A stretch of DNA of 62,900 nucleotides, counting the filler, from Ministeria vibrans ATCC 50519 (Eukaryota; Protista; Filasterea), in NCBI GenBank assembly GCA_943704425.1. It is 3 parts of 3 records of this genome, joined end to end, with 100 filler letters (N's around TTAATTAATTAA, not from the genome) between each part and the next. Parts side by side here need not be neighbours in the genome. Positions count along the whole stretch, not along the records: positions 31,436 to 61,761 come from CALSCP010002040.1; 2 more parts are not named here. The stretch is one strand, 5' to 3'. A program made the position numbers and the translations under genes. Below the pieces are notes generated by a model. The model worked only from the letters and a program-made list of their open reading frames with translations. It did no database searches and was not told the origin of the DNA. Below, in pieces: positions 33,209 through 56,219 of this stretch (position 1 is the first letter of the stretch; the number at the start of each line of letters is the position of its first letter).

Positions 33209-34209
33209 CAGACATTAGTACAAGAGAGGTTAAAAAATACTCATATGAAACACAAATAATCGCGCACGCATACTCAAGTCACGCTAATCACACAAACATA
33301 AATAAATAATATTATATAATTAAAATATATTGCACATTCATACACACACACACACACATACCTGGCTTAAGGTCGCGGTAGATAATATCTTGATCGTGCA
33401 GGTAAGTAAGGGCAGCAATGAGTTCGGCCGCGTAAAATCGACTGGACGACTCACTAAAGCGCTGTGCGAGCCGAAGGTGCGTGAACAACTCTCCGCCTTG
33501 CACAAGCTCCATCACTAGAAACAATGATCGCGAGTCTTGAAACGCCGCAACACAGCTCGCAATGAATGGGCTCGAGCACATTCGCTGAATTCGACTCTGC
33601 AGCAAAAAAAAAAATAAAAAAAGTTGAGAAACACTCACACATACAAACACAACACACAATCAACGCATACCTCTGTGATCGCACGAGGAGCAAGCTTGTG
33701 CTTGAGCATGGTAATCTTGGCCATACGCTTGACGGCATAGCGCGTGTTGTTGCCCTTGTGCACGGAAGCAAACGTACTCGCCGTCAACCCCGTCCCCAAC
33801 AGCTTCCCCAAAATGAAGTCGTCCGGTGACGCATTCTCCAGCTTCGCAGCAACCTACAATTTTAGGAGAAACCCCCGAAACAAAATTAATCTAATTTATA
33901 CTGCATTATATAGACGTACCGCTGCGGGACTGATGGACTTGAGACAACGCGAAATGAAGAGATGAATCTGCGAGTGCAAACTCACAAGAAGATCGCCCAT
34001 GGACATTCGCGAGAGCTGCCGTACAGACGATAGCGCGTGATGGTTGCGCGCAAGAATCACATTTCCATACCGGTACGCTGTACCAGAAAAAAAAAACAGG
34101 CCAAAAAAAAAATATTAAGTTTAGATTATACATTATTATTATTAATAATCATAACAAAAATAATTATTATAATTATTATAATTAATAATAATAATATTTT
34201 ATTATTTAT

Positions 34210-34258
<49 letters not shown>

Positions 34259-36005
34259 GTTTTTTTTATAATTTTCTCTTACCTGCTGCTGCGTCGCAGA
34301 GACCGGAACGGGCCGAGTCCGACACCACAATGGTGAAGGGTTGCTCGAGACGCGAAAGAGCAGCGACAAAATCGTCCACAGCAAAGGCACCGTACGCAGT
34401 CGGCGTCATATTCAAATAGAGCACGCCGTCGTCGGCACGTTGCAATAGCGTCTCACCCGTATCTCCACTCGCCGCACACCCATCACCACCACTTCCACTG
34501 CCACCCGCTTCCCTAATGCCACCATCAATCGACGCGCTTGCACTGTTGTTGTGCACCAGTGATGACGACGACGATCGCTTTGGACGCGATATCGACGACA
34601 CACGTGACGGGGGTCGCTCCGTCGTGGGCGATCGGCGACTGGAGTCAAAAAGCGATGTCGAACTCCCGCCTCGCTGCATGTCACGCAGTGTCGGGTCAAT
34701 CAGCAGAAGTTCGTCCGGGATCGGCACGCGAACTCCTATAGGAAACAAAACAAACCAAGTTAAACCACTTTCCTTCAAACAAAATAAAAATAAGCTTCTT
34801 TTTTACCTCGATAAGAACGAGAGATGGATGTGGAGATGCGCGAGAAGAGCATAGGCAGTTTGTTCGTCTTGAGTCCGTCTTTGGCATGCTCGCTCAGCGT
34901 CGTAGGTGACTGTGACCGCAAACCCGGAATAACTGGGTTGAACAGCATGTAACCATCAGCCGGCTACACAAAAACAGTATTAAATAATAGAATATTGATT
35001 ATAATTTAATGCGTTGTTATTATAATTAAACAGTTCTCTCGCACACACACACACACACACAACATTGTTTCTTTCTCTCGCTTTAGCTCTCTCAATTCGC
35101 CTTACAATGTGAGATCCACTGGCGACGTAGTTGACGAGAAGGGCACAGCCTTCGCCAAAACCAGCAACAAAAAGCGGCAGATTCGGGTAGTCCTGTCGGA
35201 TGTGGGAAACAACAGTAGCAATGTCGCCCCACACTAGATAGCGTGTAGGCGCATCAAGACGCCGTCCGGCCGACAACCCCGTCCCACGCATGTCCATGGC
35301 GTATACACCATAGCCGACGGGCGGCTCGTCGCTTTTGACTCCTTCAACAAACTGCTGGGCAGTAAGACGAAACAGGTGCGTGCCGCCAATGAGAAGAACG
35401 TTCGCCGATCGCTCACAGCCCTTGGTCTGTTGTTCAGTCACTGCAAGTGAAATCCCATCGCTACTTTCCACATGGTAAACATTGCTCAGGGGTGTCGGCA
35501 CACTCTCGAGGGCCTGCAAAAAGGGTCGCAGATCCTCTACGCCCATTGCATTTGCAGCGCGTGACTGTGCCTCGGTCATGCTCGTGCCCTCCAAAGACGG
35601 AGTCGTCGGCTGCGACTCCGTCTCGTTCACGTCTTCCTCGTGTGCTCTTGGCACAGGGGTAAGCACGACATATGGATGAGCAAACTAAAAATGAAAAAAG
35701 TGAGTAATGACGACGTTGTGTGTTTTTATTACCTTTGCCACAAATTGAGCAATCAATGGCGCACCTGAAACAAGCAAAGACAAGTGTGTCTCATTCTTTT
35801 CGACATGGACAGTCACTTGCGCCACATTGTCCTTCCACAGCTTATGCATTCCCTACCAAAAAAAAACGGTTGTTTACACAACGCATTGATTTGAGAAATT
35901 TACCTGCACATTGACAAGCTCATCGTTCTCGCCCATCAACACAGTGCACGGGTAGGTCAAATGACGCAAGGCTACACGTAAGTCCGCCACCGCAAATGAC
36001 GCGAC
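32482..36005 (-). CDS. Tandem alpha/beta-hydrolase-fold domains fused to a PKA/PRKX-like AGC kinase; 5' end missing
   Basis: Hydrolase motifs PCTVLMGENDELV, AMDMRGTGLSAG and PNLPLFVAGFGEG continue by spliced exons into LGTGLTA, YAVK, MELVQGGELF, YRDLKPEN, CDFGFAK, FCGSPHYMSPE and the AGC tail ...HFVGFDD*. Confidence 0.75.
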
Positions 36006-36112
<107 letters not shown>

Positions 36113-36280
36113 GAGTGATAGAGAGAGAGAGAGAACAAAGTGAGAGAGAGAGAGATAGAGAGAGAGAAACAAAGTGATAGAGAGAGAGAAACAAAGTGAT
36201 AGAGAGAGAGAGAGAGAGAAACAAAGTGATAGAGAGAGAGAGAGAGAGAGAGAAACAAAGTGATAGAGAGAGACGCATAC

Positions 36281-37612
36281 CTTGTTGTCGAGCATGGCGC
36301 GGACCATCATCTCGACATAGCGCGGGTGGTAGTAGTCATCGTCATCAAATTGCACGACAATCTCTCCCGTTGCGTGCGCATTGAGCCAGTTGCGCTTCTC
36401 GCCAATGCTCAGTTTGGGGCCCGAATGGAACTCATACCACACACGCGGGTCTTTGTTGGTCGCAAGGTCGATGAGGTACGGGGATGGTGCAGAGTGGCGT
36501 GGCTGGTACTTATCACCATCGTCGATGAACAGCAGCTCCATCTCGCCCAGTTTGTGGTACGTCTGCGACAGCCATGTGCCGTACAGACGCGGGTGGATCG
36601 CATGCCGTTTGTTGTATGTCGGCGTGATCACACTCACCTTGGGCCACACCTTGCGGTCCTTTGCGTGTGCTTTGGTGTGATCCAGGAACTGCTTGAGCTG
36701 CGGATGGCGGATAAAGTCTTTGGGGAATCGCATCTTTTTCGGGTCGTAGTTGGGTGGAATGGGAGTGCGTCCACCGCCCAGACTCAGCGACGGCGCAACA
36801 CCCAGCTTCTCAAAGACAGCACGGCTTCCGTCGAGGCCCTGCGTCCAATGGCACGTTGTCGCGCGCCGCTTGGGCTGGTCAAACAGTGTGTTGCGCCAGC
36901 GTCCGCCACACTGCTCGTCCGTATTGCCGGCACAGCGCGCATTGCACTCGCTCTCCGGCCGAGGATCGTTCCAGTTGCCCCGGAAGTCTCCAACAAAGCA
37001 TTCCGTCCCACTCTACACACACAAAAAAAACAAAATCAAATGAGCAGAGTGTCAAAGGAAACAGGTTTTGACAAGTGACAGCGCAACTCATTACCTGAAC
37101 CGCAAACTGAGGATACGGCGCAATTTGCTGCGCGAGCGTGCCGCACAGCTCCAGTGACATGTCAGGACCACTGTCCATCATGGTGTGCAGCGATCGACGG
37201 CTCATTGAGTCCTCAAAACATCCTTTTGCAAAAAAGAAAAAAAAAATTTCAAACGTTTTTCTTTTGGCTTTTCCAATCGCCACTTATCAACTCTCTCTCT
37301 CTCACGCACACACCACATGTTCTGTTCCATCTGCAGTACTCAGACAGACGGATCATGCGACTGTCCACACAACATGAGTCTCCTCCAAATTGTGATTTTC
37401 ATCACATTTGTGTCTCTGTGTGTGCACATACCTCGATAGTTTCCGCCCAGCAGACACCCCGACGCAAAGGCGGAGTCATCAAAACACTGGACGAGGAAGC
37501 GTGGCTTCGTCTGGAAGACGAGATCGGAGAAGAACTCAGCAAATGTGGGACAGTGGAATTCAGCAGAGACGGACGCCACGGCAATCGCAGCGATCACAAC
37601 GAGCGAGCGCAT
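36281..37612 (-). CDS. Secretory-pathway WSC-domain plus GT2 glycosyltransferase; 3' end missing
   Basis: Signal peptide; WSC domain GCFED...MSLELC...FAVQ|SGTECFVG...ECNARCAGNTDEQCGG; GT2 PKVSVITPTYN, IDDG, IGEKRN, QFDDDDYY. Confidence 0.75.
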
Positions 37613-37703
37613 GAGTGTGTACGGATCAGAGATGGATAAATAATAATAATTAAAATTTAATAATGATTAAATTATTCAATTTTAGTGTACAACAGAACAG
37701 GTC

Positions 37704-39237
37704 TTAAAATTTACCAAAAGGACTGCGTTGCGGTGGCTGATGTGTCGACTGCGACGACTCTTCGCCAATGGCAAGGGTAGTGGGGCGCGCAGAGGGTAGG
37801 GGAGCAGTTGCCTCTTCGCCGTGCGCGCGTGTGGACGCACTAATAGCACTCTCCTCGCCAAGCGCCATGGAGGTCACCTGGGGCGCAGGACTGGCGGCTT
37901 CCTCACCAAGCGCCATGGAGGTCACCTGGGGCTCCTGCGCAGGACTGGCGGCTTCCTCACCAAGCGCCATGGAGGTCACCTGGGGCTCCTGCACAGGACT
38001 GGCGGCTTCCTCGCCAAGCGCCATGGAGGTCACCTGGGGCTCCTGCGCAGGACTGGCGGCTTCCTCGCCCATTGCAAGCGTGGTCGAGTGCCCAAACTGC
38101 ACCGGTACATTGTTTTTGCCAGCAGCAGCAGCTGATGCATCAGCTGCTACGGGAGCGGCAGTGGCGAACGAGGGTGGAGAAGGAGTAGCCGAGGCCTTTT
38201 CTTCATCGGGTTCGGGGGATTCAATGCGTGGCACTGCACGCGATGAGGCAATGGACGACTCCTCACCCAATGCCATGGTCGTCACGACGGGTCCTGTGCA
38301 AGTAGCGGGCGTGACGGGCACTGCCGTCTGAGGGGCAGTTCGAGTGGCGTTCGACGGGCTGCTTTTGCCCATGGCGACGCGCGTTTGTCCTGTTACTTGT
38401 GCTTGTTGTGCGGGTGTGGCAGATTCGCCAAAGGCATTGGTAGGTGTTGTTGTTGAGGGTACAGTCGGGGTGTAGATGGTCTCACCAAAGGCTTCGGTCG
38501 GGCCGGACGGGGTGGACTCGCCAAAGGCGACGGAAGGTGCAGAGGGATGGGTCGAGTAGAGCGACTCTTCGCCAAACGCCATGGTGCTTGGAGCGGGGGC
38601 AGCAACGCCGCCTTCTTCGCCGATTGCTAGCGTAGTCGTAGTCAGGCAGGGGGGTGGTGCGACAGGCGCAGACGGTTCGGGCTGTTGCGGCGGCCGTGTG
38701 ACCACTGGCGGCGTAGGACGCGACAGAGTCTCTTCGCCCTCCATCATTGTGGTGACAACGGCCCCTGTGGCCGGTACGGGTGCGCTGGCGATGGGCGTGC
38801 TCTCTTCGCCAAGCGCCATTGAAGTCACCACCCCGCTTGGCACCGCTGCCGACACACTCTCGGGAGGTGGCCGAGTCGACGGTGGGGGCAATGCGGTTGC
38901 TGCGACCCGTGAGCCATGCGCATCAACCGTCTACAAAGAGAGAAACGGGCAGTTGAAGGAGACGCAGTTTGACCCTCATAATACGACATGAAACGCACTT
39001 GCTGTGGAATGGGCACTGTCTCCTCGCCCGTGGCCTGCGCCCAGCCCCGATAAAGAACAATGTTAATACACATGCAATGGATCCTCCGCTGCGTACCATT
39101 GTGGTTGACACTCCTGTGAGACGTTCAGACTGGAAATGACCCCAAAAAGAAAAGAAAAACACAAGGTTACGACGCGCCAACGCGATAGTGAAGCATGCTA
39201 GGGATCGCTGGATGTTTTATTGCTAGGGTCTTACCAT
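37704..39237 (-). CDS. Multi-core TTxxxGEE repeat protein, plesiocin-type graspetide-precursor-like, 4 exons, ~432 aa
   Basis: Exons 39237-39235, 39129-39097, 39034-38999 and 38930-37704 join in frame with GT-AG introns. 13 [TS][TS]xxxGEE motifs lie in P/S/T/A-rich linkers, and the protein ends SPFGKF*. Confidence 0.75.
37853..38070 (-). repeat. Coding 54-bp tandem repeat (AASPAQEPQVTSMALGEE) x~4
   Basis: Units are near-identical at DNA level; the last is shortened. Confidence 0.9.
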
Positions 39238-39392
39238 AGCAAGAGAAGTGGGTGAAACTGTTTGATCATAAAATTCGGGTCGAATAACGGTCGATCATGA
39301 AATTGAATAAGACGAAGTCTTAGCATATCTCACAAGACACAAGTCACAAGTTTGAATTTTGAAATTATTGTTATTTTGAGTGATCTGTTGAT

Positions 39393-54173: not shown

Positions 54174-55069
54174 NNNNNNNNNNNNNNNNNNNNNNNNNNN
54201 NNNNNNNNNNNNNNNNNNNNNNNNNNNNNNNNNNNNNNNNNNNNNNNNNNNNNNNNNNNNNNNNNNNNNNNNNNNNNNNNNNNNNNNNNNNNNNNNNNNN
54301 NNNNNNNNNNNNNNNNNNNNNNNNNNNNNNNNNNNNNNNNNNNNNNNNNNNNNNNNNNNNNNNNNNNNNNNNNNNNNNNNNNNNNNNNNNNNNNNNNNNN
54401 NNNNNNNNNNNNNNNNNNNNNNNNNNNNNNNNNNNNNNNNNNNNNNNNNNNNNNNNNNNNNNNNNNNNNNNNNNNNNNNNNNNNNNNNNNNNNNNNNNNN
54501 NNNNNNNNNNNNNNNNNNNNNNNNNNNNNNNNNNNNNNNNNNNNNNNNNNNNNNNNNNNNNNNNNNNNNNNNNNNNNNNNNNNNNNNNNNNNNNNNNNNN
54601 NNNNNNNNNNNNNNNNNNNNNNNNNNNNNNNNNNNNNNNNNNNNNNNNNNNNNNNNNNNNNNNNNNNNNNNNNNNNNNNNNNNNNNNNNNNNNNNNNNNN
54701 NNNNNNNNNNNNNNNNNNNNNNNNNNNNNNNNNNNNNNNNNNNNNNNNNNNNNNNNNNNNNNNNNNNNNNNNNNNNNNNNNNNNNNNNNNNNNNNNNNNN
54801 NNNNNNNNNNNNNNNNNNNNNNNNNNNNNNNNNNNNNNNNNNNNNNNNNNNNNNNNNNNNNNNNNNNNNNNNNNNNNNNNNNNNNNNNNNNNNNNNNNNN
54901 NNNNNNNNNNNNNNNNNNNNNNNNNNNNNNNNNNNNNNNNNNNNNNNNNNNNNNNNNNNNNNNNNNNNNNNNNNNNNNNNNNNNNNNNNNNNNNNNNNNN
55001 NNNNNNNNNNNNNNNNNNNNNNNNNNNNNNNNNNNNNNNNNNNNNNNNNNNNNNNNNNNNNNNNNNNNN
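54174..55069. other. Assembly gap
   Basis: Run of N. Confidence 0.99.
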
Positions 55070-55167
55070 TTTTTTTTTTTTTCCTCGTGTTTTGTTTCAT
55101 TGTCGACATCTGCCTGCCGCACCGGCGCACAGCCGCAGCTTACCGTTGTGTGCGTTGTATTCTGTAG

Positions 55168-56219
55168 CGAATGGGGAGTTTGTGGTCGTGCTGGACGACC
55201 CAGGACGCGAAAACGAAGGCGATCTGATTATCGCTGGTGAGTCGATGACAAAGGACAAGATGGCCTTTATGATTCGCCACACCAGGTACGCCGATCCTGT
55301 CGATCCACTGTGTAGCTCACTCTGTTGACGCCTCTCTCTCTATGTTTTTTTTTTTTCTTCTTCTTTTTTGTGTATGTTTGTTTGTCTGTCTGTTTGTGCG
55401 TCTGACTGCAGTGGAGTCGTCTGTGTGGCACTGCCATCATCTCGGCGCGACACCCTCCAACTGCCTCCCATGGTCACAGACAACACGGAGCGTCATCAGA
55501 CGTCCTTCACACACTCTGTGGATCTGCTCAGTGGCACGTCGACCGGCATTTCGGCGGGCGACCGTGCTCTGACCATTTGTGCTCTCGCCAATCCCGATAT
55601 TACAGACCCCAAAGCGTTTTCGCGTCCCGGTCACATTTTTCCTTTAGTCGCACGGTACCAACACACAAACGAAACAAGACACTGTGTATTGAATTGATTG
55701 TATAATTAGAGACGGAGGAGTAAGAGAGCGCGTGGGGCACACTGAAGCGACAGTCGAACTGTGTCGATTGGCGGGGAAAGAACCAGTCGGAGCACTCTGC
55801 GAAGTAACGACACTATGAATGAGAATGAATGAGTGTCTCATAGATGCAATGTAGATTGTGCTGGACAATGGGGACATGATGCGCTGCGCACAGCTGATGC
55901 ACTTTGCCCACGTACACCATCTCAAAATCATCACTATTGAAGATCTGGTACGGCAATCATATTATCAGCGTGCAGTTGCTTTTTTTTTTGTAATGTTTTA
56001 TATACGTGTGTGGTGACGAGACTAATATGGAATTTGGTGTTGTTTGCGCGACACTCTCTCAGACTGTAATATGACGATTTCCATCTGCCTTCCTTCTGAA
56101 CGCACTCTTTTATGTGAAACTTTTTTTGTCGTTTCGTTTGTTTTTTTCTTTTTGTGTGTTGATTTTATTTTCTTTTGATTATTGTGTAGGTGAAATATGT
56201 GACGGAACTGGAAAAGTGA
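55168..56219 (+). CDS. RIB3: 3,4-dihydroxy-2-butanone 4-phosphate synthase; 5' exon probably in the gap
   Basis: [53 protein letters not shown]. Confidence 0.93.

Follow-up and report, generated by a model that had tools for sequence, protein, structure and literature searches.

Can a eukaryotic nuclear gene encode a graspetide precursor, and, if so, what becomes of its core peptides? Plesiocin, with which the locus described here has to be compared, carries four TTxxxxEE cores, each closed by two Thr-Glu lactones. Its ligase recognises the core residues Gly36, Glu37, and Glu38, and the LFIEDL leader of the precursor is required for ligase binding and activation. Plesiocin is a serine-protease inhibitor whose potency is higher when more motifs are cyclised (PMC13097080). 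In the literature consulted, graspetides are described only from bacteria and archaea, and the papers searched contain no report of their biosynthesis in eukaryotes. A preliminary description of the present locus had pointed to a plesiocin-like series of octapeptides in the filasterean Ministeria vibrans; what it stated about plesiocin, i.e., the TTxxxxEE core motif, the two Thr-Glu esters per core, and the inhibition of serine proteases, is borne out by the literature.

A spliced and transcribed gene with thirteen cores

The window, i.e., the whole stretch of DNA under analysis, is 62,900 nucleotides long, filler included, and the piece analysed within it is 31436-61761 (30,326 bases). The core-array gene occupies 37704-39237 on the minus strand, and its translation gives four exons totalling 1296 nt, or 432 codons, the small upstream exons 1 to 3 being in frame with the main exon (coding part 37707-38930). 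Exon 1 (39235-39253), which is seen as a loose end of an RNA contig from run X15, is made of a 5′ UTR, at least 16 nt long in RNA, and of the start ATG (39237-39235); an in-frame stop stands 20 codons 5′ of this ATG, with no intervening ATG. Intron 1 (39130-39234; 105 nt, GT..AG, phase 0) follows directly after the ATG. We infer it from the 17-letter loose end that the X15 RNA contig displays at 39130 and that is identical to 39236-39252; its boundary is ambiguous by one C, and the GT..AG placement was taken. Exon 2 (39097-39129; 33 nt) encodes SERLTGVSTTM, with the first half of core 1, and exon 3 (38999-39034; 36 nt) encodes ATGEETVPIPQQ, with the second half. Between them, intron 2 (39035-39096; 62 nt, GT..AG) splits this core between TTM and ATGEE and is removed in an RNA contig of one run (X15; joint 39033/4 to 39096/7). 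Intron 3 (38931-38998; 68 nt, GT..AG) is skipped in RNA contigs of two runs (X8 and X15; joint 38930 to 38999). Exon 4 (37704-38930) contains 408 codons and the stop (37704-37706), with 12 intact and 4 decayed cores; its 3′ UTR extends to about 37647, and RNA contigs span 37647-38930. Hence, the splices proposed in the preliminary description hold, all three introns being GT..AG and backed by RNA contigs, and its coordinates, strand, and motif list agree with our translation and motif count. Plus-strand ORFs that run over the repeats (e.g., 37768-38331) were rejected as antisense shadows of the minus-strand gene.

In the 432-aa model, the octapeptide [ST][ST]xxxGEE occurs 13 times, against a mean of 0.014 and a maximum of 2 in 20,000 composition-preserving shuffles of the protein. 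The cores are TSMALGEE (five copies), TTLAIGEE (two copies), and TTMATGEE, TTMMEGEE, STMAFGEE, TTMALGEE, TTLAMGEE, and STRAHGEE (one copy each). In exon 4, dispersed cores are found over 38259-38825 (TSMALGEE at 38802-38825, TTMMEGEE at 38730-38753, TTLAIGEE at 38613-38636, STMAFGEE at 38565-38588, and TTMALGEE at 38259-38282), and the decayed copies over 38364-38534. The latter, which lack one of the hydroxyl residues, a Glu, or both, are SVAFGES, TEAFGET, and TNAFGES, already listed before, and, in addition, TRVAMGK. A dense block of five cores (37851-38084) is composed of TTLAMGEE and then TSMALGEE four times, with a spacing of 16-18 residues, and the last two cores (37758-37835), STRAHGEE and TTLAIGEE, precede the C-terminal tail QSTHQPPQRSPFGKF. 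Within this block, a 54-bp tandem array (37852-38069; 4.1 copies, 94% matches) contains four to five of the cores and is a recent expansion that added intact cores. The cores outside this array encode their shared residues with codons that differ at synonymous positions, which makes them older duplicates, maintained at the protein level. In spite of this synonymous divergence, 13 of the 13 cores have both of their hydroxyl residues and both of their Glu.

Comparing the contigs of the sequencing runs with the stretch, no difference was reported inside the cores. Run X15 carries a six-base in-frame insertion (GCTCCT) at 37882, in a linker of the tandem block, and run X9 a C>A change at 38227, which alters a linker codon, from Arg to Leu by our reckoning.

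The protein is rich in Ala, Pro, Thr, and Ser, and acidic, with a net charge of about −28 (41 Glu and 3 Asp vs. 16 Lys plus Arg, i.e., 4 Lys and 12 Arg). No signal peptide was seen by inspection, and there are no dibasic spacers between the cores. The protein is probably disordered: its single-sequence AlphaFold2 model, weak evidence as such models are, has a mean pLDDT of 40 and no helices. Searches against Pfam and NCBIfam returned no match except a chance one to Nucleoporin_FG, and the ESM Atlas no usable match. The FG-nucleoporin candidate was rejected, as it fails the profile test (PF13634, E 2.2, 9.6 bits vs. a cut-off of 32.2), and the resemblance to FG repeats is confined to the decayed AFGE[ST] copies.

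The core-array gene is a real nuclear, transcribed, and spliced gene of a marine eukaryote. RNA-type contigs show it transcribed and spliced in several runs, and a poly(A) metatranscriptome contig lies inside it (38637-38787). The stretch is present in sequencing runs of 10 studies, among them runs labelled as algae metagenome and seawater metagenome. Spliced eukaryotic genes flank the core-array gene 92 nt past its stop and 155 nt 5′ of its ATG, and its GC3 is 0.60, that of the neighbouring genes being 0.58-0.74. The piece also encodes FAM32A, the intron of which is confirmed by RNA contigs, a Sortilin/Vps10+PKD receptor, a RasGEF, a GT2 glycosyltransferase, and kinase exons.

Bacterial relatives and the origin of the array

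The search for related arrays that the preliminary description had proposed as a check did reveal relatives. With the main exon, which stood for the protein in all database searches, a word-indexed protein search found 4 relatives and an exhaustive HMMER search of 1.84 billion representative proteins found 68, at E-values (1.3e-15 to 1e-3) that reflect the repeats, the linkers being of low complexity and not alignable with confidence; no self-match was among the results. The four-exon join was used for motif counts and residue numbering, and the 11- and 12-residue exons were covered solely as six-frame pieces in the local profile searches. Sixty-four of the 68 bacterial-looking relatives carry 3-20 cores of the TTxAxGEE type ([ST][STC]xxxGE[ED]), and no eukaryotic-looking protein is present among them. 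Three bacterial types of N-terminus were recognised, i.e., a twin-arginine-like RRDFLRR segment (19 relatives), a Nif11-like region (8), and an HPF motif (9). P0001 and P0008, which together with 17 other relatives form the RRDFLRR group, also share a C-terminal PWKNFRRW tail; such segments may serve either in export or in recognition by the ligase.

Wherever the surrounding DNA was available, the bacterial genes had ATP-grasp genes as neighbours. The genes adjoining P0001 and P0002 match TIGR04187, an ATP-grasp RiPP maturase family (E 5e-12 and 2e-23, respectively), and the neighbour of P0003 gives a weak match to the MvdD pre-ATP-grasp domain. Moreover, for each bacterial and archaeal species, one genome was scanned with the core pattern, and 207 bacterial loci were confirmed by tblastn, in Myxococcota, Planctomycetota, marine filamentous Cyanobacteria, Thiothrix/Thiolinea, Neomegalonema, and Acidobacteriota. 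Of the 80 loci kept from these 207, 66 have an ATP-grasp maturase-like gene at most 6 kb away, usually directly beside the repeat gene. For the single ligase compared, that of locus L003, the best PDB match is 7drm (E 2e-18), i.e., PsnB, the plesiocin macrocyclase; the bacterial relatives are thus plesiocin-type (group 2) graspetide precursors. The core-array protein itself, used as query, had no relative in bacterial genomes or JGI metagenomes, where the bacterial alignment A1 found loci, and PDB sequence searches with this protein and with one bacterial relative did not find the PsnA2 peptide chain.

Cores are also found in large proteins. Three bacterial relatives, P0006 (1637 aa), P0036 (789 aa), and P0016 (474 aa), contain 8-20 TTxAxGEE cores between folded-looking domains, and one of the three is RTX-like, with repeats that bind Ca; cores are thus not restricted to small RiPP precursors. 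In IMG/VR, eight phage-like contigs (L085, L087, L089-L092, L094, and L095) have an ORF for a plesiocin-type ATP-grasp ligase (profile E 1e-36 to 1e-44), which in several of them is located directly 5′ of an ORF of 269-840 aa with 3-5 TTxAxGE[ED] cores (e.g., L089:2550-3332 then L089:3345-5864, and L090:4654-5466 then L090:5470-6942). These pairs suggest an ester cross-linking of long viral proteins. Four of the large phage-like core ORFs and one ligase had no match in PHROGs.

How deep is the likeness between the eukaryotic cores and the bacterial ones? We compared the window cores with 484 bacterial cores, which were collected by similarity to the window, so that the agreement at the free positions is inflated: Ala is found at position 4 in 92% of the window cores vs. 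86% of the bacterial ones, position 3 is Met/Leu vs. Leu/Met, position 5 Leu/Ile vs. Val/Leu/Ile, and Pro occupies position −2 in 46% vs. 44%. The log-odds summed over the pattern-free positions stand at z ~13, none of 20,000 random sets reaching the window value, and the excess persists when the 8 distinct cores alone are taken. Five of these 8 octapeptides are identical in the bacterial set, where TTLAIGEE is the commonest of them (33 times), followed by TTMALGEE (21), TTLAMGEE (7), TSMALGEE (5), and TTMATGEE (1). TSMALGEE occurs there in precursors with Nif11-like N-termini, so that Ser in place of Thr at the second position, which according to the preliminary description keeps the hydroxyl needed for ester formation, is also known from bacteria.

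Several known systems can be set beside the protein. With PsnA2 and the other group-2 precursors modified by PsnB, it shares an array of TTxxxGEE cores on a single chain, the Gly-Glu-Glu that closes each core, internal Ala and hydrophobic residues, and Pro-rich linkers. It differs from plesiocin by its eukaryotic, nuclear, and spliced gene, by the number of cores (13 in 432 aa vs. 4), and by Ser in place of Thr at the second position of 5 cores. The bacterial proteins with a Nif11-like N-terminus (e.g., P0004, P0017, and P0031) contain the exact unit VTSMALGEE, i.e., the commonest core of the window; on the other hand, their N-terminus is a leader region of Nif11-like type and their linkers, made of Lys, Arg, and Pro, are basic. 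The core-array protein lacks this region, and its linkers, which range from acidic to neutral, contain much Ala, Ser, and Pro. The fungal ustiloxin/dikaritin-type precursors also hold many copies of a short core, with a signal peptide, dibasic Kex2 sites between the cores, and oxidative cross-linking. The core-array protein resembles them in having many short cores in one eukaryotic precursor and differs by the lack of both the signal peptide and the dibasic spacers.

As judged from the sequences, there is good support for a kinship with the group-2 (plesiocin-type) graspetide precursors, which would most simply result from a horizontal transfer. We thus consider it quite probable that the core-array gene descends from a bacterial precursor of this group by such a transfer. 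Even with a bacterial set collected by similarity, bacterial descent explains the data much better than convergence does.

Ligase, leader, and fate of the cores

No ATP-grasp maturase was detected in 31436-61761, either by tblastn with three ligases (best E 0.3) or by a 62-ligase profile searched on six-frame pieces with hmmsearch --max (best E 1.8); the flanks are thus ligase-free over at least 6 kb on one side of the gene and 22 kb on the other. At the core-array locus, the TAT-like, Nif11-like, and HPF-type leader profiles gave noise only (in the controls, they recovered all of their own 19, 8, and 9 members), and a pattern search revealed no LFIEDL-like or HPF motif. The preliminary description had seen neither an ATP-grasp ligase nor an LFIEDL-type leader, and this is confirmed, for the 30-kb piece and for the locus, respectively. 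In both respects, having no recognisable leader and no nearby ligase, the protein is unlike PsnA2.

These results determine how the protein can be classified. It displays the repeated core motif of group 2 and, on the repeats alone, kinship with ligase-adjacent precursors; an ATP-grasp macrocyclase is missing from the 30-kb piece, and so is a recognisable ligase-binding N-terminal leader from the protein. Because of these last two points, we do not file it as a proven graspetide precursor and we call it a precursor-like eukaryotic derivative of group-2 graspetide precursors. As to the earlier proposal of a eukaryotic graspetide-like RiPP precursor or inhibitor of bacterial origin, the kinship is supported, through the 68 relatives and the ligase genes found beside bacterial loci of this type; a working precursor or inhibitor is not supported, with no maturase in the piece and no leader of the known types.

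We propose the following scenario. After its transfer, a bacterial precursor gene would have come to resemble the host genes in codon composition, acquired introns, and grown by tandem duplication. Another locus of the genome would encode a PsnB-like ATP-grasp ligase, which would activate both Glu of each core by phosphorylation with ATP and then join them, as esters, to the hydroxyls of the two Thr/Ser. The cores would turn into bicyclic hairpins and the whole protein into a multivalent serine-protease inhibitor, more potent the more cores it has, as plesiocin is reported to be. By analogy with plesiocin, we tentatively favour the view that the protein may still be a ligase substrate, cross-linked by an unlinked PsnB-like enzyme into an inhibitor, and we place the probability of this view somewhat under one half. 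In its favour are the four reactive residues and Gly6, kept in 13 of 13 cores, and Ala4, kept in 92%, in spite of silent divergence; the recent expansion of intact cores and the six-base length variant, which is in frame; the steady transcription of the gene; and the cores known inside long proteins elsewhere (789 and 1637 aa in bacteria, 269-840 aa in phage-like contigs). Against it count the lack of a nearby ligase, when the bacterial one is nearly always adjacent, the lack of a leader and of a secretion signal, and the four decayed copies. To inhibit proteases outside the cell, the protein, which lacks a signal peptide, would have to be released by another route. A complete eukaryotic graspetide pathway, in which a leaderless 13-core protein would be modified by a ligase of bacterial origin encoded elsewhere and act as a multivalent inhibitor, either intracellular or released by lysis, is conceivable and still rather doubtful.

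The main rival explanation is that the precursor, although of bacterial origin, has been orphaned, its ligase never having been transferred or having been lost later, so that the cores would never be cross-linked. The protein would then either be a relic in slow decay or, as a linear, acidic, and disordered chain, have been recruited to another role. This is a serious possibility, which we would nevertheless not call probable, whichever of these two fates is considered. It agrees with the piece devoid of ligase and the locus devoid of leader, with the decayed copies, with the missing signal peptide, and with the absence of relatives in other eukaryotes among the 1.84 billion representatives. 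It sits less well with the conservation of the reactive residues and of Gly6 in the 13 cores, and mostly of Ala4, while synonymous positions diverged, with a recent tandem expansion that added intact cores, with an indel between runs that stays in frame, and with a transcript that is correctly spliced in several runs and represented by a poly(A) metatranscriptome contig.

Two other readings trail behind the orphaned precursor. The array could be a eukaryotic linear motif that binds some host protein and whose likeness to graspetides is coincidental: the motif has only eight residues, it is this repeated motif that produces the E-values, the low-complexity linkers cannot be aligned with confidence, and disorder is usual in proteins that carry linear motifs. 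We judge such a convergence improbable, since the bacterial cores include exact copies of five of the eight distinct octapeptides, the preferences agree at the free positions and at the flanking Pro, no other eukaryotic-looking protein with the array appears among the HMMER relatives, and Pfam finds nothing, the weak Nucleoporin_FG match (E 2.2) apart. All of the relatives being bacterial, one could also think of contamination, i.e., of bacterial DNA mis-joined into a eukaryotic contig. This is effectively refuted by the three GT..AG introns removed in RNA contigs, one of them inside a core, by the spliced eukaryotic genes on both sides, to the next of which an RNA contig joins the 3′ end of the core-array gene, by the presence of the stretch in runs of 10 studies, and by a host-like GC3.

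If the cross-linking reading is right, this would be the first graspetide pathway known outside prokaryotes, and a leader-free one. The existence of a ligase would extend the graspetide class of RiPPs to eukaryotes and would offer a natural test of leader-independent macrocyclisation of long proteins. If there is no ligase, the gene would mean that a RiPP precursor parted from its enzyme by transfer can persist, retained for another use.

Neighbouring genes and low-complexity tracts

Downstream of the core-array gene, an RNA contig of run X8 (1531 nt) leads from its 3′ end to the next gene. There, a minus-strand ORF (37431-37616), starting at 37612, i.e., 92 nt past the core-array stop, could pass for a small secreted protein. 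More probably, it is the first exon of a longer gene and encodes a signal anchor, since it is spliced at 37431 and a 2331-nt RNA contig has it at one end, and this longer gene is probably that of the downstream GT2 glycosyltransferase (36005-36733). A search with the GT2 ORF had no match at E 1e-20, and for the Sortilin neighbour, the matches in the ESM Atlas are chordate SorCS-like clusters only.

The piece also contains several tracts of biased composition. The GC content falls to 0.18 over about 1 kb at 54436-55435, from 0.36 in the preceding kilobase; an AT-rich repeat, or else a run of N, might explain this drop. Over 34037-34336, a tract that is AT-rich and (ATT)n-like gives a poly-I ORF translation. 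A long (GA/CT)n microsatellite (35874-36278), located within or after the coding ORF of the GT2 glycosyltransferase, is translated as a poly-SL ORF.
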